Positions 1 to 51,243 of a DNA stretch of 64,000 bases are shown piece after piece (position 1 is the first letter of the stretch; every line of letters starts with the position of its first letter). Under the pieces are notes generated by a model. The model saw nothing but the letters and a program-made list of their open reading frames with translations, was not told the DNA's origin and ran no database searches. Source of the stretch: Penicillus capitatus. Its lineage: Eukaryota; Plantae; Chlorophyta. The translations under genes and the position numbers were made by a program. The stretch is taken from contig OZ287699.1 of NCBI GenBank assembly GCA_965649825.1, positions 558,001-622,000 on the forward strand, in the 5' to 3' direction.

Positions 1-143
1 CAGGCGATGGGGGACAGGAGCACCTAAGAGACTCGACATCGTGCAGTCGAAAGGAGAAACGCAACGATCGGCGCCACAAACGGTAAGATGCGTACAATGA
101 TGAGGGATCAAATATGATTCGTCGTCGTCGTCGGCAACAAGGA

Positions 144-2041
144 TTATTGTCGAGTGGGCACACCGAAGTTCTCCCAGACGCGAATCTCTCCGCGACTGCC
201 GCCAGTGACAAAGACCTGACCCCAGAGGCGAAACTCAGGAGGCAGCGTTTCGGCTGTGGGCGTCGTCAAGCCGATCATTTTCATAAGGGCATGGTCATTG
301 CTGCCCGACGGAGATCCCACGTCGAGTTTCTCACAGGGACGACGACAGATGTCGGGGCAGAAAGTAGCACATGGACAGAATCCGTGATGCGCTTGAAAGC
401 ACTCCCATTCTGAGAGCTTTTCGCGTTCTTGTTTCTTGAATGGCCGTGCAGCACCTGTCCAGACGTACACGCGACCATCATCCGATCCAGAAATGAGATA
501 GGACCCATCGACCGTCGGCGAGGCGACGATGGGACGACCAGAATCGTTGGCATGACCCTTGAACTTGCACAGATGTCGCGGAGGTGTTGTTGCCTGGAAC
601 AGTGCCATATGGTGGAGAGGGATAAGATGGGGAGAGGACTTGAAGGAGACGGATGCGTGAGTCATGTGTGCTGACGATAAATGTGTGATCGCCGACGTTG
701 GCGCGAACGATGCCTGTGACTTTTGTTCCCTTTCGATGACGTCCCGTGCGATTCTTGACATCAATCTCTGCACGTTTTTCTAATCGATTGCCGTTAAGAT
801 TGTAGATGCGACATCGACCTGGAGTGCGAACGGGGGTCATTGTTTTTTGATGTGACGTGAGAGGAGGTACCGTCAAAGCAGCCGGCAACGATCGTCCGGC
901 CATCTGCCGAGAAACACAAGGCCGTGAAAATGTCCTTCTCGCTGGCGATGCTCGCAGAGGCAACGACTTTGTACTCTGCGATATTCCAAAGTCGGAGGAC
1001 GCCGTCTCCAGAACCTAAGATCACACTTTTCTGGATGCACGCAAAGAGTGAACCGCGTTGTCTGCCTGAGATGAATCGACCGGCATCGAGGGGGTGGAAC
1101 CGAATTGAAGTAACGTAGTTGACATGAGGGAATTCCCGTAAGCAGTTCTCATGTCGAACATGCCACAGTCTCACACTTTTATCCAGAGCAGCCGATAGTA
1201 CAAATTCGGATTTGTGTGACCAACAAATATCGAGGATGTCAGATTTGTGCCCCCGGAATACTTGGAGAGGTACTGGATCGAATACGGGGATGTCGACTTT
1301 TTTCAGTGTTGAAGACTTTCTGTAAAAAGAGTGAGCGAGCAAAAAGAGTGAGATTGCCATACCTATTTTCCATCACTTGCCAGATGTAAACGTTTCCATC
1401 TTCTCCACCTGTTGCAAGCATGTTGTGATTCGGACTAAATTGCATGACCCAAACGACTCCTTGATGGATCTTTATTTCTTGTACGAGCCGCAAATCTGAC
1501 AGACATTTTTCGGACCTTTTGTTCGTCATCACCTTGCCATGAATGGACATCTCACTCTTTTATTAAGAGTGAGAAAACGTACAGGTCGTGTCTGATCGAT
1601 GCATGGTTCTCTGACAGAGTGTCGTGAGCACGGTGAAGGACTTTCTGAAATCTTCCGTCTAGTTCGATGGACAAAACTGAGTAAGGATGCACGCCTATCT
1701 CACACTTTACGCATTTTCTCACTCTTTTCTCTCGTTGCCTTACCCTGGGCTTCCCATCGACGGGTCACTCACTTGCCGTGGAGTGTTCTGGAGATCCTCT
1801 TGCGGTTCCTAAACAGAAAGACGTTGTCTTGGATGACGGTGATGAAGCACAGCTTCCCCACAGGCGTCCCAGGTTTGGGCAATTTTAGATATCCAAAGAG
1901 GTCGAGGAAATCGTCGACAGCAATCTGTTCGCCGTCCGAGATTTCGATACGGTCGCCGCTTTCATTAATGCGATATCTCTTTCCCGTCTCCAAGTCTTTG
2001 ATGATGAATTCTTCGTCGCTCAGCGCCGGTTCTGCGCTCAT
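144..2041 (-). CDS. WD40-repeat protein (WDR44-like), multi-exon
   Basis: Spliced frames give WD40 repeats: IHQGVVWVMQFSPNHNMLATGGEDGNVYIW, FRGHKSDILDICWS...LSAALDKSVRLW, FKGHAND...LISGSDDGRVYVW. Introns are 43-55 nt. ATG at 2041. Confidence 0.85.
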
Positions 2042-2210
2042 GATATGGTGGTGGTCAGCAAAATGAAAGCAATGAAGGTAAGGGACGGATGACGTGTGCG
2101 TGCGTGCGTTCGTTCGAGATCCAATGCGTCCAAGAGCCCTTCCTGAGAGTCTAACGACCTCGCGACGACCCGCGGGCGCGGTGCAAGGAAACAGCGATTC
2201 AGCAACGTCC

Positions 2211-2612
2211 ATGCGAACGGCCGTTATCTCCACCGAAACGATCCAACAAGTCCTACGCCATACGGCAAATTATCACACTAACGAAATGCATGATGGCTAG
2301 TACTTAAGCGAGAATCATGCACTTATCAAAGCCATCATGGAGGCCACCAGTCGTAACGAAGTGGCGGACTGCGCTCGGTTAGAACCTCTCTTTGTGCAGA
2401 TAACGCATGTCTCTGCTGGATGGTAGGTATCAACAGAAGCTTCAACAGAATCTGATGTACCTAGCCGCCATTGCCGATGCCCAGCCTCAACCTCCAATCC
2501 AAACAACCCAGGCACCTTCCTGTATGAAATTGTGTCCCGTTAGATTTTCTCCTCTCTTATACAGGGGATGCCAGCTCGGTTGCCAGCAGACTCCAATTCG
2601 ACTATGTCATAA
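2211..2612 (+). CDS. GIF: SSXT-domain protein (GRF-interacting factor / SS18-like)
   Basis: Joining exons across short introns gives ISTETIQQYLSENHALIKAIME...CARYQQKLQQNLMYLAAIADAQP, which matches the SSXT consensus. The last intron (GC-AG, 2512-2564) is less certain. Confidence 0.85.
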
Positions 2613-2708
2613 GATCTTACAGCGGATGTCCGGCAGCAAAATCGAAAAGCAGATCAAAGCATGCTCAAAAATGCACAAGGCTTGAAGGTCGTACAAAATT
2701 GTGTAGCA

Positions 2709-4036
2709 TCATGGGTTGGTTGGCTTCGTCTTGCCTCGAATCCGGACATGCAGTTTCTCTTCTGAGCTCGCCGTCGCTCCGAGAAGCTTTTCCTCTGTTT
2801 TCAACTGCTGTTCCAATCCAACGAGATGATTAAACTCTTTAAGTGTGACCATCTTGTCCAGCTCATCCTTCGTGCTGCCTTTCTCGGCCAAAGTCTTATA
2901 GACTTCTCTCAACGCTCTTGTCGCCGCCAACAAACCTAATCTCACACTTTTTACCAGATGAGTGATCTGTGCCCTCTCATGCCTGTGAGGGGATGGACAA
3001 CGATATGGAATCCCAGCTCTTGCAGCTCATCTAGATTTTTCATGGGCGTCAGACCACCCTCTAGTATATTACAGACACGCAGACCCTGTAGGAGAGAAGC
3101 AGTAAATGAGTAACACGTGTGAGGGTGTGCGTGCTTTTGTTCTCTTGCCGATTTCTTGCAGTTCGTAACGGCTTCTGGGAGCTTCGACGAAACCGGCATC
3201 CGCTCCAGCATCCTGTCGACTGAAAGAGTGACGGAGAAGCTGGGAAGAAGCTGTAGACCATGTAGAGATTGACACGGGTGATCGCTTCATCCAGTCCACG
3301 TTTCGCAGATGTTCCACGGGCATCTGTCCGAGCAATGAGAAAGAAATCTGCACCGTTGATAGCTTCAGACGCCGCATAGATCTAGCTCACAGCTTCTCGA
3401 TAGCTTCTTGTTTTGTAAGAGGCAGAAACGGCGGACCTTGGAAGCATGCTCCTCCATGGAGATGACTTCTTTGCCTCGCAGATGACCACCCATTTTGGGC
3501 CAGACCTGATCCTCGATGCAGCATCCCTTGCATCCAGCCTTGATCAACTGCCGCACTGTTCTCTGAACATTCAACACTCCACCACCACCTGCAGCTTCCT
3601 ATAAGCTTTTTCCTCTATTCGAGTAATGCCTGCCTGTATCCGCATCGGCAATGATCGGAAGATCGGGAACCGCATTGTGAATCTGTCCTGCTTTGCGTGC
3701 CATCTCCGGCGGCGTCAAGATCCCCAAGTCTGGTTCTCCGAGCAACGTAGCTGAGACGCCGAGTCCGCTGATAAAAGCCGCTTTGTGTCTTTCACTCTGC
3801 AGAATCCTGGCCGACCAGGCATCGTAGACGCCTTCAGGTCGCAAGGCCGATAGTGAAATGGCAGCCAGCGGTCGTCAACACGTACCCGGAAGTAACACGA
3901 TGCCGTTTTCGTCGATCAGTCGATGTACCGTCGTTTTCCGTGGCTTGGTGCCATTGCCTGCCGCAGCGACGCGACTCGCTGATCGGTACGCGTGGGATCT
4001 AACACGCCAGTAAACATTCGATGCTGCGACCTCCAT
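2709..4036 (-). CDS. Isocitrate lyase/PEP mutase family enzyme (PrpB / 2,3-dimethylmalate lyase-like)
   Basis: PGVYDAWSA, FISGLGVSATLLGEPDLG, IIADADTG, CCIEDQVWPKMGGHL, FFLIARTDAR, DAGFVEAP; multi-exon. Confidence 0.85.
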
Positions 4037-4199
4037 TCCGGTAAGAATCATGACGGTCCATTAAACAAACGACGCCGAAACCGATGTCGTTTGGTAAACA
4101 ATTTCGAGCACCACATGTTCAGCGATGTCAACCGACTGAGGATTGACCGTCCAAGAACGAACGCAGCAGCAAACAAACAAACAATAAAGAATGTGACGA

Positions 4200-5380
4200 T
4201 TAATTGGGGAACAATAAGTGTGAGACTTTCTCCACAGTATAGAGCATCACAGCATTCGCAGGAGCGGCCCGTACAAGACACGGTGAGAAGCCCTTGTAGA
4301 AGCGTCGAATGCCGCCATCTGCAAAGAGTTTCTGTCACAGAACAATCAAACGTCACTCTTTCTCACTCTTTTGTGACATGCGTTCTTACTTGAGCTGTCG
4401 GCACGAGACGAGGATAGGCGCGCTCTGATTTGACGATCGCATCGGACATCTGGGCAGATTTGATGACGTCGATCGGGTAGGTCAGGCACCAGTACATAAG
4501 CCCACCGATTCCGGCGGCGGAGAGAATGACGTAAGATGGCAGTTCCGAGGTTTTGCATTCCAATCTCTTCGCCATTTGCTCTTTCATCACCTGAAATGAT
4601 CCGAGGTAGACAGAATTGCCGGGGACATTGCGCAGAATAGTGGGAGCCAGTCCCTGAAAGGGACCCCGGATGCCGTTGGCCTTCAACGACTTATTGACGA
4701 CGTCCATAATGCCGGTAAAAGGTGGCTTGTAATTGGGATCGGCTTTGGCTCGAATGATCTGCACTTGGATCTGGGATTTGTAGAAATCGATGGGGCCTTC
4801 GGTAAAAGCGGCTGCAAAGCCTGTCATGGCACCTGCCTTGTAGAAGTCAGCCGTCGTCAGCTTTCGAACTGTCCCATCAGCATTCGTGCCCAGATACCGC
4901 TGCGATGCGCCAAAGGCTGTGAAAAGAGTTGCCCGAAAGAACATCTGTCCTGCAAGCGGAGAAGTCACACCCTGTCACATCATCTCACACTTTTGTCCGA
5001 GGGCACAACACAGCGAAAATCACACCTTGTACAGTCCTCCCATTCCTTCCCATTGAATCGTCTTTTTAAAACAATCGACCAGACCATCTAACAGGACACT
5101 TCTCGTCAGCGAACGAACGAACATCCGCTTGGCATTACGGTAGATGGGCGGATTGGTAGGCTGCGTCTGAAGTCGAACTTTGAGTGTGTCGAACGGATGG
5201 CCGACGAGAGTGACGGATAGGCCACCTGAAGCAATTCGGGTCACGAGCGACAAGAGCCGCGTCCGAGGAGGTTTCACCCGCGGTGCCGGCAACGATGTCT
5301 CCCACCACTTTGAAAATACCCGACGTGACAACCGGGGCCACGGCTGTCGATGCCACAACGTCTTGCGGTTTTGTCGTCAT
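4200..5380 (-). CDS. Mitochondrial carrier (carnitine/acylcarnitine carrier-like, SLC25)
   Basis: Three carrier signatures: [36 protein letters not shown]. The C-terminal exon reads [21 protein letters not shown]. Confidence 0.9.
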
Positions 5381-5626
5381 CTCGAGACTTCGCGGGCGGT
5401 GTTTGACAAAGAACTGCGAAAGCGAGCAGTCGGCAAAGATCGATCGTAGATTCTCCAACGGTGATGGGACACTTCACGATGGGACGTCTTCAGATATGGC
5501 CTGACCGCGAGCGTAACACAGGAGCAACCGTTTGGTCGAACGATCTTCCCACCATCCAACTGCAAGTGCGTTTTTTCTTGTCACCCTTCGTTTGTGCGCG
5601 TCATCTATTTTCGCACGACCACACCT

Positions 5627-6532
5627 ATGCTTCAATCTATGTCTACTCTCTTCGTATTCATCGCTGTCTTATGTATCCACGTGTGCGTTGGCCAAACTGC
5701 TTCGGCTCCAGAAATGCAGCCGTCGAACGAAGGTGACGTCGACGACATCGACGCCATCGCGTTCGTCGAGGAACACGGGATCGAAGCGTATGATGAGATT
5801 TTCTATCACAGGCGCTCAGACAATGTCACGGCATGTCTACAGTCTCCAGATGCCAGAAGCCGCGTCATCCAGATTTGTATGTCGCACACCATCATGGAGC
5901 AGTGTACTATCGGCGGAAAGAAATCGCACTTCAACTTTCATGACTGTCAGGGACGCTCATGCATTTCAGCCTTTTCGAGAGAACTGTCCATGTGTTTGCT
6001 GGAGAAGTCAGGCGTCATACCTGAACTGAACAGAGAGCTGAGCGAGGAATGGATATGCGCTCTGCCTACGGGTGGACATCCCATCTTCGAGTGGCAGCCG
6101 CCTGCTTTTATACAAGCGATGGGAAACAGAAGTCACTTTGACTGTTTGACGGCATTGCCTCCGAAGACACTCCTGGAACGTAGAGTCACGTGCGAAGACG
6201 GATACCCTATCGTGGAACACCGCTTGACATTTGTTTCTGAGTCATTTTTAAGAACCAATGAACGAAAAGTGCGATGCGTGGCATCACAGTCATGTGGATT
6301 GCCTGGGATCTTTACTGGAGAACTGGCATGTTACGCAGTCGCAGCTGAGGAGGAGGACGATCGTGATAACGGCGATGATGATGCACTGGATTTTGCAATT
6401 GCCGAATCTCCCGAGACATCTTTAGAGATTTTCGATGACAGTAGTCATGCTGTTAGAGCAGCCTTCTCTGCAGAAGGATGGATGATAGTGATGGCCCTAC
6501 TGATGATCTTTTTGAGTCTATTTTTTCAATGA
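5627..6532 (+). CDS. Hypothetical secreted/surface protein, Cys-rich, with C-terminal hydrophobic tail (possible GPI anchor)
   Basis: Intronless ORF of ~300 codons with an N-terminal signal-like segment (LFVFIAVLCIHVCVG), many Cys, an acidic linker and a terminal hydrophobic stretch (WMIVMALLMIFLSLFFQ). Confidence 0.6.
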   Translation: MLQSMSTLFVFIAVLCIHVCVGQTASAPEMQPSNEGDVDDIDAIAFVEEHGIEAYDEIFYHRRSDNVTACLQSPDARSRVIQICMSHTIMEQCTIGGKKSHFNFHDCQGRSCISAFSRELSMCLLEKSGVIPELNRELSEEWICALPTGGHPIFEWQPPAFIQAMGNRSHFDCLTALPPKTLLERRVTCEDGYPIVEHRLTFVSESFLRTNERKVRCVASQSCGLPGIFTGELACYAVAAEEEDDRDNGDDDALDFAIAESPETSLEIFDDSSHAVRAAFSAEGWMIVMALLMIFLSLFFQ

Positions 6533-7026
6533 TGTTCATTCGACGAAGTTTATCTCCCTTCAAGACCAATACAGACGCCATTCATTCCATGCCCATCGCA
6601 GACATCCGATGTCCTAATGGATTGCTGGGTAGAATGGATGCACAGTACATAGACAACATTCACACACATGGCCTTGGAGGATGAACCTGTGGGATTTTAG
6701 GATCTTTTTCTTACACACAATCTCTCTCCTTATATATGCATGCACATAATAATGACCTCAAGCCTCTATCAATTTATTCTTTTCTGCGCTATCGCTGAAA
6801 AGAGTGTGTTTGTATGGCTTCTCCTTTTTCTAGTAATTCATGCTGATGGGGGAAAGACTGATGACGTGATGGATCTAGGGAGTGTTTGTTTGTTCGTTTG
6901 GTTGCAATAATCAGGCGATCTATGTTCATAAAGCGTTCGGCGTCGTGCTTCCTGTGCGTTTGTTCACCCGTACCACCATTTGGCTCTCCGCCACAGAGCC
7001 CCGCCTTTGACGCCTTCTCCGCCAAA

Positions 7027-8575
7027 ATGCACACCTTTTCGTCGCTCCTCAACTCAGAGGCGACGCTCCCGGGCGTTGCTGACTACGAACACGTGGCGAC
7101 GCTCGTCCTCGGCGGTCTACTCGGATTCTTGGTGCGATCCAGCCATGGCCCCATCGCACACAACGTGTCTATCGACAGGTCGCGCTATGGGTCGGGTCCG
7201 GACGCAATACGAACATGACGGCACTCTCCCATTCCTATCTTCGCCGTGGCATCGCACTGATTATGCGCGGCATTGCCCTGCTCAAGTGTGGAGGTCGATA
7301 GTCACGGCCGTCCATCTTCGACGCGGTTTCTCTGCAGAGATGTGACGTTGGCCTCAATCTGGTGGACACCTCCTCCTCGCGTGCGTTCATGGGTAGAAAA
7401 TTCGTCAATGGGATCCACGTCGACCGTAACGGAAAGATCTTCGGCTGCTTCTTCGTCCTCAGACAAAACACGTACAGATTGGTAAGAGATCGCGATCTCG
7501 AGGTAGATGTCTTCCGAAAGAAATGATGTGACTAGGTATGGCACAGAACGTGACGTCGAAATTTTTTTGTCGCGCATCGGTGAAGACAACGGAAGGTGGA
7601 AGTGCATTTGTCAAAATACATTGGAAGGCTGCTTAAAATATGAAGCTTACTGCCGTATCTTGCCGGTTGCTCACTCTTTTGATCACAGATGATGTGACAT
7701 CTCGGTCTTATGTACTAGGGGGGTAAGACCGAATACAAGTCGGTGACGCTGGTGAAAGATGCCACAGCAGAAGAGATGACAGAGTTCTATCTGGATGATC
7801 AATGTCGTTGTCAATGGGTAAAGCAGTTTCTCACTCTTTTCGCCCGAGAATGTGTGACGGACTCTATAGGACAGTATGTTAGCGCATACCGAGCAACTCG
7901 AAAGCGGTTCCGTACGCGATCGCTGCGAAGTGGTGCGCTGGATTCGTCACTTTCCGTTTCCTTTTCTTACGGATCGAGAATACGTCATCGGCCGACGCAT
8001 TTTCCGTAAAGATGACATCATCTACACCGTCAGCAGGGTACCAAAGAGTGAGATCGTGCATTTCGAATATCGTTTTGTGTGATCAGGGCATTGAGCACGC
8101 CGCCGCGCCAATTCAAGATTCCTTGGTGCGCATGGACGTTTTCTATTCGATGTGGAGTTGTCGGGATATCGTGTGTCCTTGGGGAACAGATCAACGCGCC
8201 TGTGAAGTGGTGCTGCTGCACCATGAGCAGTTTAAGATCCCGGAGAAGCTCGCACGCTTCGCCGCCTGCAAAGGCATGTGGGGTTTCGTCAAGTCGATGG
8301 GTCCAGCCATGACATCCTACATCCAGACACAACGCGCAGCCTCTCGCTTTTCCCGTTTCTCGCATTCGAATTCCGAAATCAGTTTCACAACGAGCGAAGG
8401 CTCGAGCAGTTCGATGGAGCGCAACGGCAAACCGAACAAGCTCATGCGCACGGCAAAGCGTGCACTGATTGCGACGTTGGTGACGGTGATCCTCATCAGA
8501 AGATCCCAGGCTGCCCATTTGACAATGACATCTACTCGTACGACAACGAAAGCGAATGGATCCAAACAGAATTGA
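7027..8575 (+). CDS. START/lipid-transfer domain protein (PCTP-like)
   Basis: VRWIRHFPFPFLTDREYVIGRR, VRMDVFYSMW, EVVLLHHEQFKIPEKLARFAACKGMWGFV. The start codon is uncertain. Confidence 0.8.
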
Positions 8576-8959
8576 AAACCCTCTTGCCATATTTGATTGA
8601 ATGAAACAGCAACTGGTATCAAGGGATGTGTGTGTTCGTTCGTTCGTTTGTGCATGCTCTCGTGGGGAAGACACAACGGTTAAGATTTCTCCGTGGGGTA
8701 TCGATTTATGTTATTATCAAAGAAACAGCACGGGATGTGCGGTTTTGCCCATATGTTTGGCGCCGTTGTTGTCATTGGAATCCATTGTTATGATTGCGAA
8801 GTGAATGTCGTTTATAGAATGACCATTAGCCAGCCGTGTACTCTTTGTTCTCATGAGAGCTAAGTTACATGCATCACAACAGACAATAAAGTATACGCCT
8901 GTCGAGAACGGCACAAGATTGTGGCAGGCATCCCGCAGAAAGGCAAAACTGGATTCGGA

Positions 8960-11900
8960 TCACACGCGTGGCTCCACTAGCAGAAAACCTTCTCTCATGC
9001 GTTCCAGTTCTTCCAAGACTTCATCGATCATCGGCCGTTGCTGTGGATCTTCTGCCCAGCAGCGTTTGGCCAATTCTGTGTAGCATTCAGGGACGCCGTC
9101 TTCGAATGTTGGCCGCCAGTTATCGTACATGATTTTTTTGATGATCAGAAAAGGCGGTACCCCTTCCAAGGGACTCTCTTTGGAAACCAGTTCCCACATG
9201 ACGATTCCAAAAGAGTACACGTCAGATGCAGCTGTCAGTCGCTCCTCTCGGAAGAGCTCCGGAGGCATATGGGTTACGGTACCCGTCGTCTGCGTCGAAA
9301 CATGTGTTGCATGCATCCCTAGCTCACGGCTCAATCCTGTACCCCAAACAAAGATCACACTTTGTATAGCGGTCACACTTTTGGCTCACCGAAATCAGCC
9401 ACTTTCGCCACGAAGCGTTTTCGTTCGTGCGAGCTTCCATTCAACAGGATGTTGGAAGATTTCAGATCGCCGTGGATCGTATTGCGATGCTTCAGGTAGA
9501 GCATTCCTCTGCAGATATCCACACACGTCTCGACAACCAGCACCTGCAGAATGATCCTTCGATCGTGGAGGCATCGATCACACGACGGACCATATTGAGT
9601 CGCTGTCCTTTCACGAATTTTCCTTTCCTTATGGCCTTGTCTAGACTGCCCATGTCACAGTACTCCTGAACGAGCCATGTCTCGACGCGATCTGTCGAGA
9701 AGCTTCGCCCTGTCGAGGTCAAATCCAAGCTGCTACTCATGCTCCTAAACAGCCACGAAATCTTGTGGAAAGAGTGACTGAATACCGGTCACACTTTGGT
9801 GGCGGTTCTGGCCGATACTCATTCGGAACCATTTCAGCCAAATTGAGATATCCACCGCCGCCGCCGCCGATTTCTTTCCTTTCCGACGTCGGCGTTGGAG
9901 GGGCAGGTGGACTGGCAGGAGTCTGGATGACCTAAGATATCGCATATCAGCCGTCTAATCTGAAGGCAGATGCGTGGAGTGACCGGATGTTGCTGACTGA
10001 CCGTCGGGATATGTTCATCCTGCTTTATTTCACGAGTCGTTTGTACGAATGTCTGGACAATGTTCGGATGGTGCAAGTTAGAACTCAAAAGCGCTTCTCT
10101 CTGAGCAGAAGTGCCACGATAGCTCAGTCCATCATGCACGATGACCTTCACCGCTACCGTTGCGCCATTCCATGTGGCTACAATGATAAGGATTGCTCAC
10201 ACAAAACAAAAGAGTGAGTTCTTTACCTTTGAATACTTTTCCAAAGCTCCCAGCCCCGAGCAACGAACCCAATGTGACAGAACCCAACAAACGGCTTGCA
10301 GCTTGCTGATAGGTTTGATGCATATCCACGTTATATCTAGGAGGCAGACATGTTAAGTGTGACCCATAGCAGAGTGAGAGATAGTGTACGCAGCGAGAGG
10401 ATTGGTCGGAATTTCAGGTGTGAGAAATGTCCTCCGTGCTTCCTGGATACCCGTCTTCTCAGCGATCCGAGCCGTCACAGATCCTGTGGAGCGATCGGAT
10501 GCCGGTCCCGACCATCGCTCACTCAGTCGAAACCTGCACATATGCTCAAAACCGGAAAATGTGTGAGAATCACACCTGTAGATGGTAAATACACAGACCG
10601 CCATCAACACGCACATGACCCCAACAATGACAGCGGCTGAGAAGATCAAGGTCTGCTTGTCAGACGGATGTTGGGTGACGGGGATCGCCGTGCCCGGGTG
10701 ACTCTCTGAGTATTCCACGACGTTTTTGGAGTCGGTGCCGTTAATCACGCCTGCCGGAGGTGGAATAACCGTAACCAGACACTGACGCACATGGTATCGC
10801 ACACCGAAGGCCAGATCCCCATTACCATCTCCCCTTTCGATCAAAAAAGACGCATCTTCAATAAATATGGCACCTGAAGGGCACTCGGCCTCTTTCGGAC
10901 ATTTTTCTGCAACGCAGAGGGCAGCAGAGTCGAGATGGGAAGGCATCAATAAGGAGGTGCTTACTCAGCTGACAGCTCTTGAATTCGGTGAGTCGTGAGC
11001 GGCAGTCTTCTGCTTTCCAAACCTCGATTTGTTGTCGTCCACTGCCAAGGCCATCGGGCCGTGTTCTCTTGCGCAGTCCTTTGACCATCCTCTTCAGGTC
11101 ACTGTTACCGAACCCATGCTGCGTGTCCATTTCGATGATCACATTTTCCAACACCACCGTTGCCCGTGGGGAAGCGTCGATGAATGGAAAGATGACTGGC
11201 CATTCGTCCGATGAGAAAATATTGCGCAGGATGAGATCCGTCACGCGAATAATAGGAACACCTGCCACCTAGTAACCCATTCGCACAGTTCATTCTCTCA
11301 GGCACCATCTAAGGCGGTGCTTACGGGAACGCAGCCGTACAACCGTTCTTGGAAATTGATGATGATGAATGGGGGAATGGAGCGACTCGGCTCATAGATG
11401 GTGGTGTTCACCAGCACAGGCTTCTTCTTGCAGATCTTGAAATCCAACGCCACGTTGTAAGGAATGGCAATATGATCATTCTCATTTTCAATTGCCTAAT
11501 GATGCATGGACTCACTCTTATGTGTAAAAGAGTGACCATACCAGTGAGAAGGCTTTCGATACACTAACGTCGGCCTTTTTCCGGTGGACGAATTTGATAA
11601 TGGTATGCGTCAGGTGCCACGTGTAGTTCGGCGTCCATGGGATGGTGGTGTTGTAGAAAATGAGAGCTCCATGTGGACACCTGATGCCCTCATTTCTGTC
11701 GCACCACCAGTCCGTTATGCGACTCCCAGCGCCATAGGGCAACGCCGAAGGATCATCCATGACGGAACGGAGATACTTCGCATTGCGGCGAATCGTTGGT
11801 CCGTTCTCTTCGATGAAGACTTCGACAACGCAGTGATCCAATTCCAGATGCGTCTCCGGAATAGCACCCCGTTCGTTCTTCTCTGGAAGATGGACCCTCA

Positions 11901-12373
11901 GATAATGCATTCTGTCACACTTTAGAGATATGTGCAAAAGTGTGAGAGGATGACCTTTTAGAAATTAACATTTGTCGTCCGGAAAGCATTTGGTGCAAAG
12001 AGCGCCCGTCGAGATCGATTTTGGGCCGATCCTCTTCACTATACCGCATTGGATAGGCGCTCACTTCGATCATGCTCTCAGGGAGGGGCAGCCGCTCTTG
12101 AGGGTTACTGGGAAATACCCATCCGTAATAGTTGCGCAGTTCCACATCGCTATCCAAATATACTAAAGTCCTGGATCTAAAAGAGTAACCGATTTTGCAA
12201 AAGAGTGAGAAGCGTGAGGAGGCGTACTTGTTTTTCATGGCGTCGTGAAATTGCTGTGAGTTGATGACAAGATGCCTCTCCTCTTGTTGACGATTGAACC
12301 CGCCGCTTGCCGCCGTCAGTGTGAGAACGTGGCATAAAAGTGTGAGAAAGATGCGTCCATGCGTCGACTTCAT
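8960..12373 (-). CDS. Receptor-like TKL-family Ser/Thr kinase (signal peptide, long ectodomain, TM helix, kinase)
   Basis: GSLLGAGSFGKVFK, VAVKV, IHGDLKSSNILL, VADFGLSREL, GTVTHMPPE, DVYSFGIVMWEL; TM segment LIFSAAVIVGVMCVLMAVCVFTIY; exons joined across ~10 short introns. Confidence 0.88.
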
Positions 12374-12853
12374 GACGCCGCATGAAAAGAGAAGCACCGT
12401 CGAAGTCGGCCACGAAGCGTTGGGACTCTTCACTATAATGAACGTACCAACCAACAAACCACGAAAGCACACTGCTCTACAAAGCCGTCGTTTCACCAAA
12501 GAACTTCGCCGTTTGAATAAAGAAGCCACAACAGACGACGGCGTAACTGGCAGACACACGCCGCTGTCAAGCAACGAGCAGAGAAGCGGGGGAGAGCGCA
12601 CCGTCGAACTTAACGACCTAAAATGGCGCGTCCGTGATTGAAGCGAACTGTCACTTTTCACAGAAAAACCAGAGCGATACAGGGCGCGGATCGAAGGGCG
12701 TTGCGGGTCGAACAGTCACATCTGTACCATCACAGACGTCCTTATCCAGGTCACCCTTTTTGAAATGACAGGCAGGTGTTAAACTGTTTCGTCCTCGACA
12801 ACATGATCAACAGACACAACGTGATGCATCTGTTTACCCATCTTTCTCCTGTC

Positions 12854-15747
12854 TCACAATTTGTCTTCGTATTCGGATAGTGGTGCCGGTTCTGGTTTGA
12901 GTCCTTTGCGTTTGCGAGTGTCCAGCAGAATTTCGTTCGGTTGTGTGCCGGGCTTCATCGGATCTTGTGCCATGGTCTCCCAATGATCGAACACCGATTG
13001 TGGGAAAGCCTGTCCAGAAGTGGCGGCTCTGAGCGTCGATGTGAAACCGAAGGACTCGACGACAGGCAAATGGGCTTTGATATTGTAGATCGGCGTTCCT
13101 GGTCTCTGAGATTCCTCAAAGACGATACCACGTTTCTGATTGAGCACACTGTAGATACCACCCAGTGCTTGCTCGGGTGCTTGGATCTCGACCAGATAGA
13201 TGGGCTCCATCAAACGGGGCTCGGCTGTCAGCTGACAGGCATAAAGACAACGACGACAGGTCGGGATGATTTGACCGCCGCCGCGATGAATGGCATCGGC
13301 GTGGAGGACAACGTCATGGATCTCGAAGCACACACCACGCATGTTCTCGTCACACATCACACCTTCTTTCGTCGCCCACTGAAAGGCTGCAATACAGGAG
13401 TCTTTGATTTCATTAAGATACTGCACACCCTTGGCGACGTCGATGAACATATTGGGTCCCGTTGTGTCGGGACCAAAACACCAGACCTTCTTGGCCGATT
13501 CTTTGTCCCAGCCGAACGTGGAGCTCATGTATTGAGAGCGAGCCTTGGGATCATCTCTAGGGCCGATTTTGCCTTCTTCGATTGCTTCAGGGATGCCCTC
13601 TTCCAGTGGCCTGGCTGTAAGATAGATGCGATTGTGCTTGTTGGCTGATTTGGACATGCAGGTGTGATCCGATTCCTGTGAGACGGTCTCGCGGAACGAC
13701 ACGACAGGATCTGAGACGCGGATCTCGGCACCGCCCATGAAGTCTTCTTGGAGATCTTTTAGGCAGATCTCCAAATGCAGTTCGCCTGCGCCAGCGATGA
13801 TGTGCTCCCCTGTCTCCTCCATGGTGCACTGAACCATGGGGTCAGATTTGGACAGACGTTTCAGTCCTTCCACGAGTTTGGGCAGATCTCCAGCGACTTT
13901 GGGCTCCACGGCCACGCGCACGACCGGAGAAACGCTGAATTTCATTGCCTGTTACATCACATGTCAGAAACATCAGGGAACTGCGGTGTGCTCTGTACTT
14001 TGATGGGATGTGCATCCTCGTTCTTTTCGTTCGTCAGTGTGGCATTCTTTGTGATGAACTGATCCAACCCCACAAGTGCCACCGTGTTGCCGCAGGGGAC
14101 GTCTTCTACGGCATCTTGTCTTCTTCCCATGCACAGCACGGTCCGTTGAACATTCTTAATGGATAGATCTTTTTTCTCTCCGGGGATAAAATTCGGTCCC
14201 ATGATACGGACCTGTCACATCACCACCATCTCAGCAATCGTGGGACAGAAGAACATTGACCGCACTTTCTGTCCAGTATTGACTTTTCCAGAAAACACAC
14301 GACCAAAGGCAAAAAAGCGTCCCTTGTCGTTGGACGGAATCATTTTGGAAACATACAACATCAGTGGCCCATCGGCATCGCAGTTTCGAATAGCCGTGGC
14401 ATAAACGTCATCCAATGGACCTTCGTAGAGATTATCCACACGGTAGTTCTGTGCGATTCCTGGAGATGGCAGATGCCAGATCATCATTTCGAGTAGCGCA
14501 TCCTGCGCCGGTAACCACGTTTGCATCACACGTTTCATGAATGGTTTGGCCTGTAGATCCTTATCCTCTGCCTTGAGTTTATCTGTCACTCCCAACTTGT
14601 CCGTCATCGCAAACACCTTCTTCTTATCATCATTCATACAGGCTTCGATCAGATGTTTGATCGGTTCGTACACAAACTGCACGAAGCTGAACACAGCACA
14701 GAACACGTGTTGCTGCCATCACAGCTGCGTCAGGCATTTTGTAGTACCCTCTCTTGCACGTGGCCGTTCCTGTGCTCTTCTTTGTCCATTTCTTTGTTGC
14801 CGGATCAAAGAAATGATCTCCCCAGAGTCTCTCCATCATCTTCGCCTCCTCGATGCCGAACTTCGCGGCATACATCTTGGCAAATGTCGTCAGAGTGAAC
14901 GCCCATCCGTGCAGTCCGGCAGAAAACGAAACGGTGCCCTTGTCTGGGAAGACCATGCAGTCCCCCATCCGTTCATCCGTATACGTTGCCATGATCACAT
15001 TGGCGTTCTCGATCACACGCAGATAACCAGTGTAGGCTTCTTCGCCGTCCAACATGAGTTCCAAAAAACAGCGATCCAATTTGTTGACGGTTAGGACAGG
15101 ACGAATCCGTTCACCAAGCGCCTACATCCAGCACACCTGTCACATCATGTGCGTACAGGAATGAGATCTGACTTGACGCAGAACGGTCTCTGTCTGGACA
15201 CAGACACCTTCAACGCAGTCGACCACGACAAGCGCTCCGTCTGTAATGCGCAGCGCCGCCGTGACTTCGGATGAAAAATCGACGTGACCCGGCGAATCGA
15301 TCAGATTCACGAGATAAGCATTGCCATCGCGTTTTCCTGGAAGAACGACATCATCCATCCCATCCCGATCACAGCTGCCGCACCTGTAAAGCCCTTCAGT
15401 GCCTCATCTGTCATTTCGTAGTAGAGTGAGATTCCAGTCGATTTGATCGTAATGCAACGATCCTGTTCATCTTGACGCGTGTCCGTCAGACGCTGGTCTC
15501 CAGCCTGAGTGCACGTACATACTCTCTGGAGAGAACGGGCTGAGACCGTGTACCTGCTCTACGGCGATGATGCCTGCGGCCGCGACGAGTGAATCCGTCA
15601 ACGTCGACTTGCCTAGAACATCCGGCTGCAAACAAGGCATGAACGAACGTACATACCGTGGTCGACGTGGGCGATGACGCTCATATTACGGATGTTGTGC
15701 TTCTTGTCCATCAAGGCACGCAACTGGTCGATCGTGAACTTCACCAT
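12854..15747 (-). CDS. EEF2: Eukaryotic elongation factor 2
   Basis: [48 protein letters not shown], diphthamide motif [15 protein letters not shown]-terminus EYEDKL. Confidence 0.98.
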
Positions 15748-15819
15748 CGTGCTAGAGTCTTGGACGCGAACGCCGAAGAAATAGACAAACAAAGCAGGTG
15801 ACTCATCCGCCGCCACTGC

Positions 15820-15869
15820 TTTATATGACTGCCATGATGTGACGGACACCTTGGGCGTCATGATGTGAC
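15820..15869 (-). promoter_or_regulatory. EF2 core promoter: TATA-like ATATAAAG preceded by two GTCACATCA copies
   Basis: TATA-like element at ~15820-15825 on the minus strand, ~75 bp upstream of the EF2 ATG; CATGATGTGAC direct repeats covering the 9-mers at 15835 and 15861. Confidence 0.5.
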
Positions 15870-16640
15870 TGATATACGGACGACTGTCGAGGGAAATCTC
15901 GCTGCTGTTGCACACAGACGTCGACGCAATGGGATTTCGCGCCGTCATTGTGCCGTTTCTACTTGGGACTGGATCAATGCTGGCACTATTTGCGCTGATC
16001 ACCTCCCGAAAGGCCCCCTGTTGTCTTAGTGGCATTGAGGAGTGCGTTCACTGGCACAGTGTCTTAGTACTCTTAGGAGCTGTGTGCGTTTCGAGCTTTG
16101 ACGCCGCTTGGTGACAGCACAGGCGTTGTTCATACAGCAACCGTGTTCGTGAGTGTGGCGATAGAGCAGTGTTCGAATTATAGACAACTGCATCGGAACA
16201 CTATAGGACGCTGAGAGGGCGTCGGGACATGTCTTTGCTTCTCTCGTTTCTCTGGTGGCAGTCGTGCTGCATTCAATCACGTTTTCTTCACAGGCATCAC
16301 TCTTGTTTCATGACACACCTTGACGATTCAGTCTCGGTGCTTCGCTGTCATTGTTTGCCGAAACGTAGACGACGAAGTTTCTCGAGTAGCTGATGGCATG
16401 AGAGCGTCATCAGGAGATCCGGGTTCGATCGACCGTTTCCAAGAACGAGGAGGCATCACACGCAATAACGACGTCCATATCGCCAAGAGACCGACACCTC
16501 GAGCGGCAGCAAAACCGACAGTGACGGTCGTGCCTGATTGTACCCTCGACAGCAATACGGTGCTGGCGACTGACGGCAGGGGCAAAATGCAGAGACGTAA
16601 AGTCTGAAAAGAGCCGAGATTTCTCATGTCATGTCAGACA

Positions 16641-19600
16641 ATGTCGAGTGCAAAACGTCGGAAGGTGAAGGATGAGGCGGCGCCGAAGGAAACCTTCCGC
16701 TGTGAAGAAGACGTCCAACGAGCACTCTTTCAGAATGAAGTATGCTGCTATGTGACAGGAGACCTCGACAACCAGTCCTGCATGGCAGATCACGGCTGTC
16801 GCTAAAGAGGCACAGTTGAAAGATTTCAGCGAAAAAGAGCTGATCAAAATTCTGGCGATTCTGACGCGATGTTTGCGAGAAGAGAGTGAGAAAAGTGTGA
16901 CAGCGACGGCTTCGCATCTCAACTATGCTAAGAAGCTGTGCATGGACCCCAGTAGTGCTGTTTTGGATTGTGTCCCTTTGGAAAGACCATTGGAATGGAT
17001 GAGCCGTCTGCAATTTCGCACGACGCTTGTCGATGCCTCCGTGCCTGTGACAATGGAGCTTCCTTCATCGATCTTCTACGAAAAGGATTATCTAAACCAT
17101 CAGTACACCTGGAAGAAATTCCTCTACCTCCATTACTGTCGGAAGATCTGGGCAAAGCGATCAGAAGTGCTTTCTTGTCGGATGTGTTTCTATCGGGAAG
17201 AGCTGCGATCTCCGTATCTCTGCCTGGAATGGAAGACGGCCCATGGTTCTCAGAAGTAGAACAGAAGACAAGGGAGGATCGCAGAGAATGTGGAATGCAT
17301 CGTTTAGGTTTGATGTGGTACCTGTCCTCTGGAAAGATCTGTTTCCGTATCGGCGATTCTTACTTGAGCAGAACAATGTTCGTGGAATTGTGGGAGCAGA
17401 CAACCAGCTCGTGCCCACGCCTTGCAGCAATCTCATCCTGCTAAGGGATATCACTTTGGCAACGAACACGGCGTTTATTGACAAGACCATCGATTCCTTG
17501 ATCTCATCAGCAACTATTATCGAAACGCTGATTCTGATCAAAGTGAATATTCGAGGGACATGCATGGATAAGTGATGTGACAGCGTGTGTTTTACAGGTT
17601 TGGTGTCGGAGTCATAGACTGGATACTGTTGATGGTTTTGATGACATTGTGTGGACGATTCTCATCTTGAGGGGCATTCGGAAAGGACAGATCTCTTCGG
17701 ATGCACCATCTCTGACTGTGCTCTATTCCGTTCTATCACTCTTGAAATCTTCTAAGCTATCGAAGATCATGAATGCGACCGAAGAATGTTGGAATTTTGA
17801 AGAGGGGCCACACAAACTCGTTGGTAGTGACAAGCGACTGAGCGCCGAGGCGTTTCGCGAGCGGGAGATGGAGTGGATGGCTGATGTGACAGGTGGATAC
17901 AACTTGATCTGGGATGTCTCTCGCTCTTGGATGACGCACATGAAACACGCAGCGGAACGAACGCTCGCTATCTTGACAGGACAGCATCTCACAAGAGGCG
18001 TTGACCGAGCCAGAGAGATCTTCACAGAACTCCGTGCACTTCCTGCCCACTTCGATGCCGTGATCCGCATACCGATGCCATCCTCGGAGAAGACAAAACC
18101 ATGGGACACATCACCTGTCACGTCACTGATCGATTGTCAGGTGTCTCTCGCAACTGAGCAGTGATGTGACGTTCAGGAAATTTGTGAATCGGATCGAGAG
18201 AATACTGCAGGAGGCGTTGACGGATCGTTACACTTTGATGCGATGTTTACCAGATGCAGAGGACAGGACAGATTCCGAACAACAGCCCTGTGTTTTGGTC
18301 TGTCTGCAATTCGACAAGGAAACTGTGTGGCGATTGTCGGACAAGGGTCCATCCCCCGAAGACAAGGCCGCCGCAAAAACCTTTCGCGAGTTCTGGGGGA
18401 AGACATCCAAATTGACGAAGTTTCAAGATGGCTCTGTCTGCGAAGCTGTCACATGGGACAGTGAACCTGGTCATCGACACGAAATCATCGACAGGTGAGG
18501 ATAGCGTTGCAGAGAGGCACGTTTTCTGAATCTGTGTCTGCAGAATCGTTAACAGTGTTATCAAAAGACACCTCGGTGTGCAGCCTCAGGGTCAGGCATT
18601 ACAAATTGCTCCATTGTTCGATGTCGGCTGCGAAAGCCTGTCGACACAAGCCATCGACGCCACAAGACAATTGGCCGCAACACACGAGGTCGCTCAATTG
18701 TTGAGAGAATTGCAGGAGACAGCATTAAAAGTGCTGAGCGTTCAAGAAATAAGCCCATCCAGCCGCAGAACCTCATGTTTTGCAACAGCTTACCATCCTC
18801 TGGCGGATGCATCGGATGCAATGACGGACAATGCCGTTGCCCGTTGCATCGAACCGGTGGATCTTCTGGTCCATTTGGAAACCTCTGGCAGCTGGCCAGT
18901 TCATCCTGAAGCCTTTGAGCAGACAAAGATCGCTATGTACGCTCAACTCAGTGCCGTTCTACAAAAGAGAGGGCACTTTGCCAAAGCATCTCGCCGTTTT
19001 GTCGATCTCTTCTTCTCAGGCTTTGCATTTCGGCTCCATTTCGTGACAGAACGGTGCGCCTTTCTGTGCACATCTGCACATCTGTCGAATGATGTGACAG
19101 GGAAGAAAAGGAAGGTTCACTGCTCGTCATCACGAAGCACCGATACCACAGCCTTATCAAACGATCTGTCGATCGTCATCCGCCTCTCTCATTGACGGTG
19201 AAGCTGCTCAAGAGATGGGCCTCCGTACATTTATTCGATTTCCATCTGCATGACTGCCTTCTTGAATTGCTTGCTGTCTACGAGTACAACAAGCAAACGT
19301 CCCATCAACCCATCATCTCTCCGATTAGAGGTGGTCCTTCCAACCCCACAGATGCACCCACAATGCTTTCTTTGGCGTGCAGGATTTTTCAGAGTACTGC
19401 ATCTGATCTGGACGTTTCCGTGGTCTGCTATAGCACTTGTCGTGGATACGGATGATGAAATCAGTGCCAACGATATCCGATCCATACAAGCCTGGCACTC
19501 TGAGCAGAGAGCAACAGACCCTGACATGTACTCAATGGCCATCTGTACGCCCTTTGATCGACAGTCTTCGTTGACCAAGACCCACCCAGACACGTCTGTC

Positions 19601-48801: not shown

Positions 48802-51243
<2,442 letters not shown>

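Follow-up and report, generated by a model that had tools for sequence, protein, structure and literature searches.

A 12-base word confined to the introns of a ~17-kb block of adjacent genes in an algal genome

Known motifs of chromosomal domains include the pairing-centre motifs of C. elegans, which are bound by the zinc-finger proteins HIM-8/ZIM, as well as the X-chromosome rex/MEX motifs and the Drosophila MSL recognition elements. Also in C. elegans, 21U-RNA (piRNA) clusters carry an upstream Ruby motif at a fixed distance from the small-RNA start, with a conserved 5' U. The introners of Micromonas, Aureococcus and fungi are shared over their whole length and form new introns that are absent from relatives. 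The BOC1 region of Mamiellales green algae covers hundreds of kb of low GC and holds many small AT-rich introns with no conserved motif (PMC3491373).

The regional intronic pattern described here is real and matches no described element. Its repeat unit is a sharply bounded 12-mer, A-AAAG-W-GTGA-G-A. In the window, i.e. the whole 64-kb stretch of DNA that was analysed, the 11-mer AAAAGWGTGAS has 17 exact matches compared to 0.16 expected from shuffles, and 16 of these lie at positions 1170-12346. The core AAAGWGTGA is matched 29 times (1.62 expected; largest shuffle 7), 26 times at 1021-12345 and on both strands. About 0.3 core copies are expected in this 12.4-kb stretch, in agreement with the first-pass annotation of this DNA, which had predicted well under one copy in 12 kb and had counted about 30 exact or near-exact copies there. 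When one-mismatch 11-mers are included (n = 14, background about 1.3), roughly 40 copies are recognisable in the domain. The annotation had also listed about three copies in the remaining 51 kb; there are exactly three, at 16892, 35178 and 41613, and the latter two are isolated, their number being at chance level. Among 100 predicted introns, the 12-mer is the only word that is clustered by region.

The excess of copies over background amounts to 18, 14 and about 6 at zero, one and two mismatches, respectively. In 13 of the 14 one-mismatch copies the mismatch is at the edges, and in one it falls in the GWGTGA core (p = 3e-4); this edge-tolerant, core-sparing gradient resembles a binding-site profile. 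Beyond the 12-mer no flanking conservation was found out to 60 nt on each side, the information content being about 0 per position. Ruby motifs are likewise small, intronic and clustered, with unrelated flanks, and occur on both strands regardless of host-gene orientation. However, they are also intergenic, whereas the 12-mer has no intergenic copies and resides in introns of about 50 nt. A Ruby-type 21U cluster was rejected, as no position within 60 nt of the 12-mer exceeds 0.25 bits of corrected information.

We read 73 kb of this genome, comprising the window and a 9.2-kb left flank, and found one domain. The left flank includes nine further copies, most of them within 4.7 kb of the window, so that the domain measures about 17 kb and extends beyond the left edge of the window by about 4.7 kb. 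It is gene-dense, with about nine unrelated neighbouring genes distributed over the two strands. The right border falls between the start of a kinase gene (12373) and the end of the EF2 gene (12854), and copies stop abruptly at about 12.35 kb: the neighbouring EF2 gene has seven short introns and zero copies. The earlier claim of regional confinement thus holds across the 73 kb read, and the claimed sharp limit stands for the right edge but not for the left, which lies beyond position 1021 on account of the nine flank copies.

GC varies between 0.46 and 0.54 across the window, the domain being of ordinary GC, and introns have a GC of 0.494 compared to 0.502 for the window; intron size and density are alike inside and outside the domain. 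Like BOC1, the domain shows a regionally confined intron peculiarity in a compact green-algal genome, but its GC and intron size are uniform and a conserved motif is its defining feature, and a BOC1-type region was rejected on these grounds (PMC3491373). Like the chromosome-domain motifs, the 12-mer is short (about 12 nt), asymmetric and indifferent to orientation; it is strongly concentrated in the non-coding parts of a single region, is lineage-specific and turns over rapidly. Those motifs, however, extend over megabases or whole chromosomes including intergenic DNA, whereas the present domain is short and intronic. It is also internal to a 1.58-Mb contig, about 480 kb from the nearer end, and therefore not near a contig end. 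Given its small size, gene density and ordinary GC, together with this position, the analogies to pairing-centre, dosage-compensation, centromere-adjacent and subtelomeric domains that had been proposed find no support in the 73 kb read.

Three relatives were compared. L004, a sister lineage that is 86.5% identical, has orthologous copies that are partly decayed, and the motif is absent from two more distant relatives, L001 and L005. The copies in the window are as follows.

1..12373, no strand: in-window part of the domain, delimited by motif and intron counts.
1017..1055, minus: WD40-gene intron of 39 nt (frame continuity, by eye) with an inverted pair, sense 1021-1029 and antisense 1043-1051.
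1171..1179, minus: coding copy in the WD40 repeat DKSVRLW, identical in L004.
1320..1362, minus: WD40-gene intron of 43 nt with two direct antisense copies, 1326-1334 and 1343-1351.
1545..1592, minus: probable WD40-gene intron, boundaries uncertain, with a hairpin pair, 1552-1560 and a partial AAGAGTGAG at 1565-1573.
1690..1755, minus: WD40-gene intron with an uncertain 5' boundary, holding direct sense copies at 1700-1708 and 1719-1727.
2942..2950, minus: copy near the 3' end of a PEP-mutase/PrpB-like gene in an ambiguous intronic or coding context; two 1-nt indels relative to L004 suggest that it is non-coding.
3213..3258, minus: PrpB-like gene intron of 46 nt with one antisense copy, 3223-3231; position kept in L001 and L005, both without the motif.
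4332..4389, minus: mitochondrial-carrier gene intron of 58 nt with two abutting direct sense copies, 4353-4361 and 4363-4371.
4972..5025, minus: carrier-gene intron of 54 nt in which a single sense copy, 4985-4993, precedes the genome-wide 3' element ATGATGTGACAG; orthologues of 46 nt (L001) and 37 nt (L005), both without the motif.
7666..7718, plus: START-domain gene intron with one antisense copy, 7671-7679.
7818..7869, plus: START-gene intron of 52 nt with an antisense copy, 7831-7839, and a degenerate sense AATGTGTGAC.
8039..8086, plus: START-gene intron of 48 nt with a sense copy, 8043-8051, 5 nt from the 5' splice site.
9337..9389, minus: receptor-kinase gene intron of 53 nt with two direct sense copies, 9355-9363 and 9373-9381; orthologues of 44 nt in L001 and L005, without the motif.
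9745..9794, minus: kinase-gene intron of 50 nt with an inverted pair, one copy at 9789-9797 that overlaps the 5' splice site (ccaaa/GTGTGAC, slash at the splice site) and an antisense one at 9769-9777.
10178..10226, minus: kinase-gene intron of 49 nt with an antisense copy, 10209-10217, and a degenerate sense TTTTGTGTGAG.
10337-10389 and 10534-10575, minus: two kinase-gene introns with degenerate copies only (CTCTCACTCTG, GGTCACACTTAA, GTGTGATTCTCACACATTTT); the L004 orthologue of the latter intron holds a perfect AAAAGAGTGAG.
11496..11541, minus: kinase-gene intron of 46 nt with a hairpin pair, antisense GTCACTCTTTT at 11527-11535 and AAGAGTGAG at 11512-11519.
11912..11954, minus: kinase-gene intron of 43 nt with an inverted pair, antisense 11937-11945 and sense 11915-11923, the latter forming the 3' end of the intron (...GTGACAG).
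12150..12227, minus: first intron of the kinase gene (3' end 12150 or 12175) with an antisense copy, 12200-12208, and a degenerate TTACTCTTTT.
12337..12345, plus: coding copy in the kinase signal peptide (IFLTLLC), identical in L004.
16892..16900, plus: outlying copy in the probable coding sequence of the Nrap gene, 4.5 kb to the right of the border, conserved in L004.

Motif-bearing introns make up 16 of the 27 introns in the domain (about 60%) and one of the 73 outside it (Fisher p = 1.4e-10). By sequence type, 22 copies lie in 1.56 kb of intron and two, at 1171 and 12337, in coding sequence, so that the earlier statement that nearly all copies are intronic needs these two exceptions. The 2.46 kb of intergenic DNA in the domain contains no copy, where about 35 would be expected at intron density. 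The element is thus tied to introns and not simply to non-coding DNA, and the earlier view of introns as the only neutral space available is not supported.

Such intron restriction is what an RNA-level element of splicing or structure would show. Copies in sense could serve as purine-rich enhancers or as decoy 5' splice sites that bind U1, those in antisense as branch point and pyrimidine tract, and inverted pairs could fold into small hairpins, either reducing the effective length of the intron or pairing it with a neighbour. The word does resemble these signals: the copies at 9789 and 11915 overlap a real 5' splice site and a real intron 3' end, a left-flank copy at about -7506 overlaps a predicted 5' splice site, and in some introns the antisense form CTCAC+TCTTTT is located 9-16 nt from the 3' splice site. 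Motif introns also fold slightly better than other introns (mean z -0.86 vs -0.12, p = 0.04), but the stems are only 9-11 bp. The orientation of copies relative to the transcript is balanced (16 sense, 18 antisense) and their distance to either intron end ranges from 0 to more than 35 nt, which disfavours an RNA signal read in one orientation; an ordinary splice signal, sense-only and at a fixed distance, was rejected on this basis. Nor is the word found in introns genome-wide, as 72 of the 73 outside introns in the 73 kb read, including the seven of the highly conserved EF2 gene, are motif-free while matching the domain introns in size and general signals. By comparison, the 3' element TGATGTGACAG of this genome, likewise restricted to introns, is sense-oriented, terminal and present along the whole window. 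Orthologous introns in L001 and L005 do without the motif, and there is no obvious reason for a splicing code to differ over 17 kb. We therefore regard a splicing or structural role as improbable, in accordance with the first-pass annotation, which had argued against a splicing signal.

Many introns contain two copies 10-22 nt apart, in direct or inverted order. In six or seven of them the arrangement CTCACWCTTTT-loop-AAAAGWGTGAG looks like terminal inverted repeats, and the presence of both orientations is typical of DNA transposons. The copies might accordingly be decayed terminal repeats, tiny MITEs or remnants of intron-creating transposons. Against this, homology ends at 12 nt, the loops (5-13 nt) are mutually unrelated, direct pairs are as common as inverted ones, and no target-site duplications were seen around the pairs; a MITE or terminal-repeat remnant was rejected for these reasons. 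Like introners, the motif puts a shared sequence into many introns of unrelated genes, in what is probably a green-algal host, but only 12 nt are shared, with no similarity in the 60 nt on each side. Introns of the carrier, kinase, PrpB-like and START genes are at the same positions in L001, L005 and L004, and domain intron positions and lengths are conserved in the motif-free L001 and L005, which means that neither new introns nor transposon ends are involved. Motif introns show no length gain relative to their orthologues beyond that of motif-free introns. An introner was rejected both on its flanks and as a recent intron gain. Transposon or introner ancestry, now largely refuted, is hardly credible; the two checks proposed earlier, on flanking homology and on orthologous introns, both speak against it.

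Comparison of orthologous sequences places all copies before the split from the sister lineage. Derived departures from the consensus number four in this lineage and 21 in L004. About 20 changes were expected on this lineage's branch (intronic rate, 19-23% pairwise divergence), and its observed share is lower than the 0.38-0.42 expected from relative-rate counts (p = 0.006-0.016, with about 25 sites and some ascertainment bias). L004 loses copies at about the neutral rate, and any constraint is therefore lineage-dependent or weak.

The main rival to selection is a selfish or neutral local burst, in which short-range templated repair, by microhomology-mediated template switching or short-patch ectopic conversion, spread the 12-mer from one intron to others nearby in an ancestor shared by both lineages, with copies decaying since. 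Copying in cis naturally gives local confinement, template switching yields direct and inverted pairs at such spacing, and the mismatch spectrum fits a single burst, as do the age of every copy, the near-neutral loss in L004 and the lack of the motif in the two distant relatives. Survival would be limited to introns: the word mimics a 5' splice site (AAG-N-GTGAG) in one orientation and a branch point with pyrimidine tract (CTCAC-TCTTTT) in the other, so that copies in promoters, UTRs or exons would do harm. However, the motif introns have not lengthened, copy boundaries are constant with no flanking bases co-copied where template switching should leave ragged ends, mismatches spare the core, this lineage has retained copies better than its branch length predicts, and the 73 kb contain no source array or longer master copy. 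We consider a burst possible but rather unlikely.

The reading that we tentatively favour is that of a lineage-specific array of cis-elements under selection, probably binding sites of a sequence-specific factor that works on gene bodies. The protected core and the slower change seen in this lineage lend some support to action at the level of DNA, and keep the earlier proposal of a binding-site array the best available, apart from its argument of "neutral space". The 12-mer would have arisen in the common ancestor of this alga and the sister lineage, inside pre-existing introns, replacing intron sequence without lengthening it. It may act at the level of DNA, or through the purine-rich strand that becomes single-stranded when the gene is transcribed, as a set of putative recognition sites for a factor such as one with several zinc fingers. 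This factor would work on transcribed gene bodies and confer on the gene block a shared property, for which chromatin state, replication, recombination and co-regulation are candidates. A plain DNA-binding array does not predict the lack of intergenic copies unless one further assumes that its sites have to be in transcribed DNA or do harm in UTRs and promoters. It is also a demanding task for selection to produce at least 35 12-mers from point substitutions, so that a copying mechanism may still be needed for their origin.

It is conceivable, if doubtful, that a green alga marks one block of about 17 kb and about nine genes by an intron-only 12-nt word that is legible in both orientations, as an address for a putative DNA- or ssDNA-binding factor. 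If so, the factor would confer a common chromosomal behaviour: the block might serve as an origin or replication-timing zone, load cohesin or condensin, be hot or cold for recombination, or form a chromatin domain under joint regulation, and the word would have evolved in the last ~15% of sequence divergence, with selection still maintaining it here.

A search of the window against Rfam gave no match over the motif-bearing introns; its single hit, at 49699-49819, is a TPP riboswitch.

Exact matches to the 11-mer AAAAGWGTGAS number 17 across the 64 kb of the window, where shuffles that preserve dinucleotide composition predict 0.16; 16 of the 17 lie at 1170-12346. Its core, AAAGWGTGA, was found 29 times (1.62 expected; 7 in the largest shuffle), with 26 copies at 1021-12345; the three core copies that the first-pass annotation had noticed outside the cluster are at 16892, 35178 and 41613. 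GC content is flat along the window (0.46-0.54), so composition does not explain the cluster, which is real and statistically very strong. A left flank of 9.2 kb, retrieved via a protein encoded in the window, contains 9 further core copies, of which 8 lie no farther than 4.7 kb from window position 1. The motif is absent from ten predicted introns at -8.9 to -5.7 kb, except for one copy that overlaps a 5' splice site. The right border is sharp: beyond the final copy, at 12337, comes the EF2 gene (12854-15750), whose seven short introns are all free of the motif. Together, the flanking copies and the right border define a domain of about 17 kb with about nine genes on both strands. The regional confinement proposed earlier thus holds within the 73 kb read, but its left limit does not, as copies continue for about 4.7 kb to the left of the window.

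Alignment of 35 core copies (26 from the window and 9 from the left flank) gave a sharply bounded 12-mer, A-AAAG-W-GTGA-G-A, with zero information at positions beyond it, up to 60 nt on either side. The domain includes 18 perfect 11-mers and 14 one-mismatch copies, while about 1.3 one-mismatch copies are expected from the rest of the window. The possibility that the copies are decayed transposon ends was set aside as very improbable, since flanking homology was looked for and none was found beyond the 12 nt; a transposon or introner origin is further contradicted by the lack of a target-site duplication, the ancestral intron positions and the absence of length gain.

A 1.58-Mb ENA metagenome contig (ERZ25074695, ctg340523) matches the window over part of its length at 99.3-99.5% identity, and the window therefore represents another haplotype or strain of the organism behind this contig; the nearer contig end is about 480 kb from the window. 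Over 1-23939 the two differ by about 0.5% at 1-11.4 kb and by about 0.9% at 13-24 kb, which again points to two haplotypes or strains and makes divergence lower in the domain than just outside it. The region encodes ordinary eukaryotic genes. From left to right these are an ADP-glucose pyrophosphorylase just left of the window (best named relative Botryococcus, 57%), a WD40 protein, a PEP-mutase/PrpB-like enzyme, a mitochondrial carrier, an intron-less secreted-type protein, a START-like protein and a receptor-type kinase, followed by EF2 (closest to plant EF2, 75-76%), Nrap, a linker histone, a Kelch-BTB protein, ThiC, preceded by a TPP riboswitch, and others. The pyrophosphorylase, the riboswitch ahead of ThiC and the plant-like EF2 mark the organism as a probable green alga.

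Genes were modeled with a purpose-written exon-chaining program that scores coding sequence with a periodic Markov model, rates splice sites with matrices and allows GT..AG introns 36-100 nt long. Chaining by codon usage alone gave poor models, and a permissive version merged genes and produced spurious introns of 100-200 nt. The final version recovers all seven EF2 introns, which had already been identified by manual comparison with homologues, and predicts some 100 short introns in the window as a whole. Their general features are a weak donor (AG|GT, then A/C at +4 and G at +5), a 3' portion rich in G and T, and YAG|G. The WD40 gene was fragmented, so its introns were read by eye; some boundaries are uncertain, and with these imperfect models intron-level statements are approximate.

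The core motif is present in 16 of the 27 introns predicted within the domain, whereas elsewhere in the window 1 of 73 has it (Fisher p=1.4e-10). In the same stretch, the 1556 nt of intron account for 22 copies, while the 2460 nt of intergenic sequence have none, against about 35 expected there at the intron density. The argument that introns are the only neutral space available therefore fails, and the process that introduces or maintains the word is linked to introns, or to non-coding sequence that is transcribed. Coding sequence contains two copies, at 1171 (WD40 repeat DKSVRLW) and at 12337 (kinase signal peptide). With respect to the transcript of the host gene, 16 copies are sense and 18 antisense, their position varies from intron to intron, and many introns include two copies 10-22 nt apart.

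Close pairs of motif copies in the domain (window positions)
1326/1343, direct pair
1700/1719, direct pair
4353/4363, direct pair
9355/9373, direct pair
1021/1043, inverted pair
1552/1565, inverted pair
9769/9789, inverted pair
11512/11527, inverted pair
11915/11937, inverted pair

The motif resembles a 5' splice site with one extra base (AAG-N-GTGAG) and, in the other orientation, a branch point with a pyrimidine tract (CTCAC-TCTTTT); because of this likeness it may be tolerated only in introns. Copies at 9789 and 11915 in the window overlap real splice sites, and one at about -7506 in the left flank overlaps a predicted 5' splice site. An ordinary splice signal was rejected, in agreement with the first-pass annotation, because the orientation is balanced, the position varies and 72 of the 73 introns outside the domain lack the motif. 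Other roles at the RNA level, as decoy splice sites, enhancers or small hairpins, would account for the intron restriction but leave the regional limit unexplained, and we consider them quite improbable. The folding of motif introns is only marginally more stable than that of the remaining introns (mean z -0.86 versus -0.12, p=0.04), and no small-RNA start at a fixed distance downstream of the motif was found within 60 nt.

A screen of all 6- to 8-mers in predicted introns revealed no region-private word other than sub-words of the motif. Another over-represented word, (A)TGATGTGACAG, follows a different pattern. GATGTGAC has 26 copies against about 2 expected; these are spread over the whole window, mostly sense, and located at the extreme 3' end of introns. 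It serves as this genome's example of a splicing-type element, in contrast to the domain motif.

Examples of the second word, GATGTGAC/(A)TGATGTGACAG (window positions)
4974, second intron word
14214, second intron word
15139, second intron word
17574, second intron word
19091, second intron word
32424, second intron word
52088, second intron word

GATGTGAC occurs 12 times in 20 kb of L004, a sister lineage, and twice in each of two more distant relatives, L001 and L005, which suggests a lineage-specific change in 3' intron signals. Introgression of the block from a lineage with different introns was rejected, as the density of GATGTGAC is equal inside (0.40/kb) and outside (0.41/kb) the domain; synteny across the domain border, conserved in four genomes, also counters it.

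Three orthologous regions with conserved gene order were retrieved. L004, part of a 790-kb ENA contig, covers 20 kb of the sister lineage and is 86.5% identical to window 1-19270, introns included. L001 (with L056, from one Logan sample) and L005 (from another, GC 44%) are more distant, with exons 71-88% identical (mostly 73-82%) and unalignable introns. In the comparison of orthologous introns that the first-pass annotation had suggested, intron positions in the carrier, kinase, PrpB-like, START and EF2 genes proved to be the same in L001 and L005, and motif copies are at chance level there (1 in 21 kb of L001 plus L056, 2 in 20 kb of L005). As negative controls, three short-intron loci on long ENA contigs of other green algae, found via AGPase paralogues, gave 1 copy in 61 kb. 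Introns of the window lineage and L004 are on average 7-9 nt longer than their orthologues in L001 and L005 (about 50 versus 43 nt), in the domain as well as in EF2, with or without either motif.

Examples of longer introns in the window lineage
14212-14262, longer intron
14687-14747, longer intron
3382-3436, longer intron

An insertion test gave no motif-specific length excess over orthologues. Since the intron positions are old and there is no motif-specific lengthening, the motif arose through replacement of sequence inside old introns, and not through intron gain or net insertion. L004 includes 13 perfect core copies, and nearly all window copies have an orthologue there that is perfect or carries one or two changes; conversely, two perfect L004 copies correspond to degraded ones in the window. 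This dates the copies to before the window lineage and L004 separated, and to after both had parted from L001 and L005.

At sites that can be aligned, most of them exonic, the branch to L004 exceeds the window branch 1.4-1.6-fold in length (223 versus 139 changes and 183 versus 130, with L001 or L005 as the outgroup). Intronic non-motif sites differ between the window and L004 at 19.3% (23.4% with gaps). Positions picked for a perfect window copy diverge by 10.2% (16.1% with gaps), which is about the neutral expectation from the L004 branch alone. With symmetric site choice and the consensus taken as the ancestral state, 4 derived departures fall in the window lineage and 21 in L004 (expected window share 0.38-0.42, p=0.006-0.016); about 20 changes are expected on the window branch at the intronic rate. 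Among one-mismatch copies, 13 of 14 mismatches are at edge positions (1, 2, 4 and 11) and one in the GWGTGA core (p=3e-4). These tests, which use about 25 sites with some ascertainment bias, point to constraint that is graded along the motif and stronger in the window lineage than in L004.

We describe the motif copies as a dispersed cis-element array with an unusual intron-only placement, and infer its function. Our tentative preference, to which we give somewhat less than an even chance, is that the array is selectively maintained and consists of candidate recognition sites through which a sequence-specific factor would act on gene bodies. The sharp 12-nt unit, the orientation independence, the homotypic clustering without fixed spacing and the core-sparing, slower-than-neutral change favor it. 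The main rival, which we regard as rather unlikely, is a burst of short templated copying among neighboring introns, followed by decay. Such a burst explains why the copies are locally confined, why they occur in close pairs, direct or inverted, and why L004 loses them almost neutrally, but leaves the constant copy boundaries, the absent length gain and the retention in the window lineage unexplained.

If the copies are binding sites, the domain would be a very compact natural case of a chromosomal domain set by a dispersed sequence word, and the intron restriction would mean that introns of a compact genome carry positional information for a whole gene neighborhood, beyond their own splicing. 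If they stem from copying, they would record a mutational process that repeatedly writes a short word into nearby introns, which would bear on the origin of intron sequences and, eventually, of new regulatory sites. Under either reading the motif is a simple marker with which to follow the region in metagenomes. With an orthologous region in a sister lineage, where copies are partly decayed, and two motif-free relatives, the birth and turnover of the motif can be traced base by base.

Pairing-centre and dosage-compensation entry motifs are dispersed recognition words of chromosomal domains, and C. elegans has Ruby-motif small-RNA clusters. These are the closest known kinds, from which the present domain differs in that it spans 17 kb rather than megabases, is strictly intronic and has no fixed-distance downstream signal. 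A literature text search with motif strings returned primers only and no description of the motif. In the literature on green algae, no regional intron peculiarity was found besides the Mamiellales BOC1 region, which has low GC and small introns without a conserved motif (PMC3491373) and is in these respects the opposite of the motif domain. A scan of JGI metagenomes for inverted 11-mer pairs yielded 46 loci, each a lone hairpin in unrelated sequence, with no additional cluster.

Several other elements were observed in the window.

Other sequence elements in the window
15836-15869 (+), CATGATGTGAC twice, direct, 26 nt apart, upstream of the EF2 gene, non-intronic
16883-16901 (+), AGAGTGAGAAAAGTGTGAC, resembling two motif copies in direct orientation, 4.5 kb beyond the domain
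49699-49819 (+), TPP riboswitch (RF00059, Rfam, 60.1 bits, full length)
2107, CGTTCGTTC / GAACGAACG repeat
4155, CGTTCGTTC / GAACGAACG repeat
5111, CGTTCGTTC / GAACGAACG repeat
8637, CGTTCGTTC / GAACGAACG repeat
15641, CGTTCGTTC / GAACGAACG repeat
17955, CGTTCGTTC / GAACGAACG repeat
31022, CGTTCGTTC / GAACGAACG repeat
55194, CGTTCGTTC / GAACGAACG repeat
56456, CGTTCGTTC / GAACGAACG repeat

The paired CATGATGTGAC may be a promoter element that reuses the motif word. The AGAGTGAGAAAAGTGTGAC stretch is probable Nrap coding sequence and is kept in L004. The riboswitch lies within the 5' part of the ThiC (radical-SAM) gene, adjoins an open reading frame at 49986-51149 and is apparently in or beside an intron, like those of green-algal thiamine genes. 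The short CGTTCGTTC / GAACGAACG repeats (10 occurrences of the 9-mer) recur near gene ends and in a few introns, and may represent a UTR or terminator-associated element.
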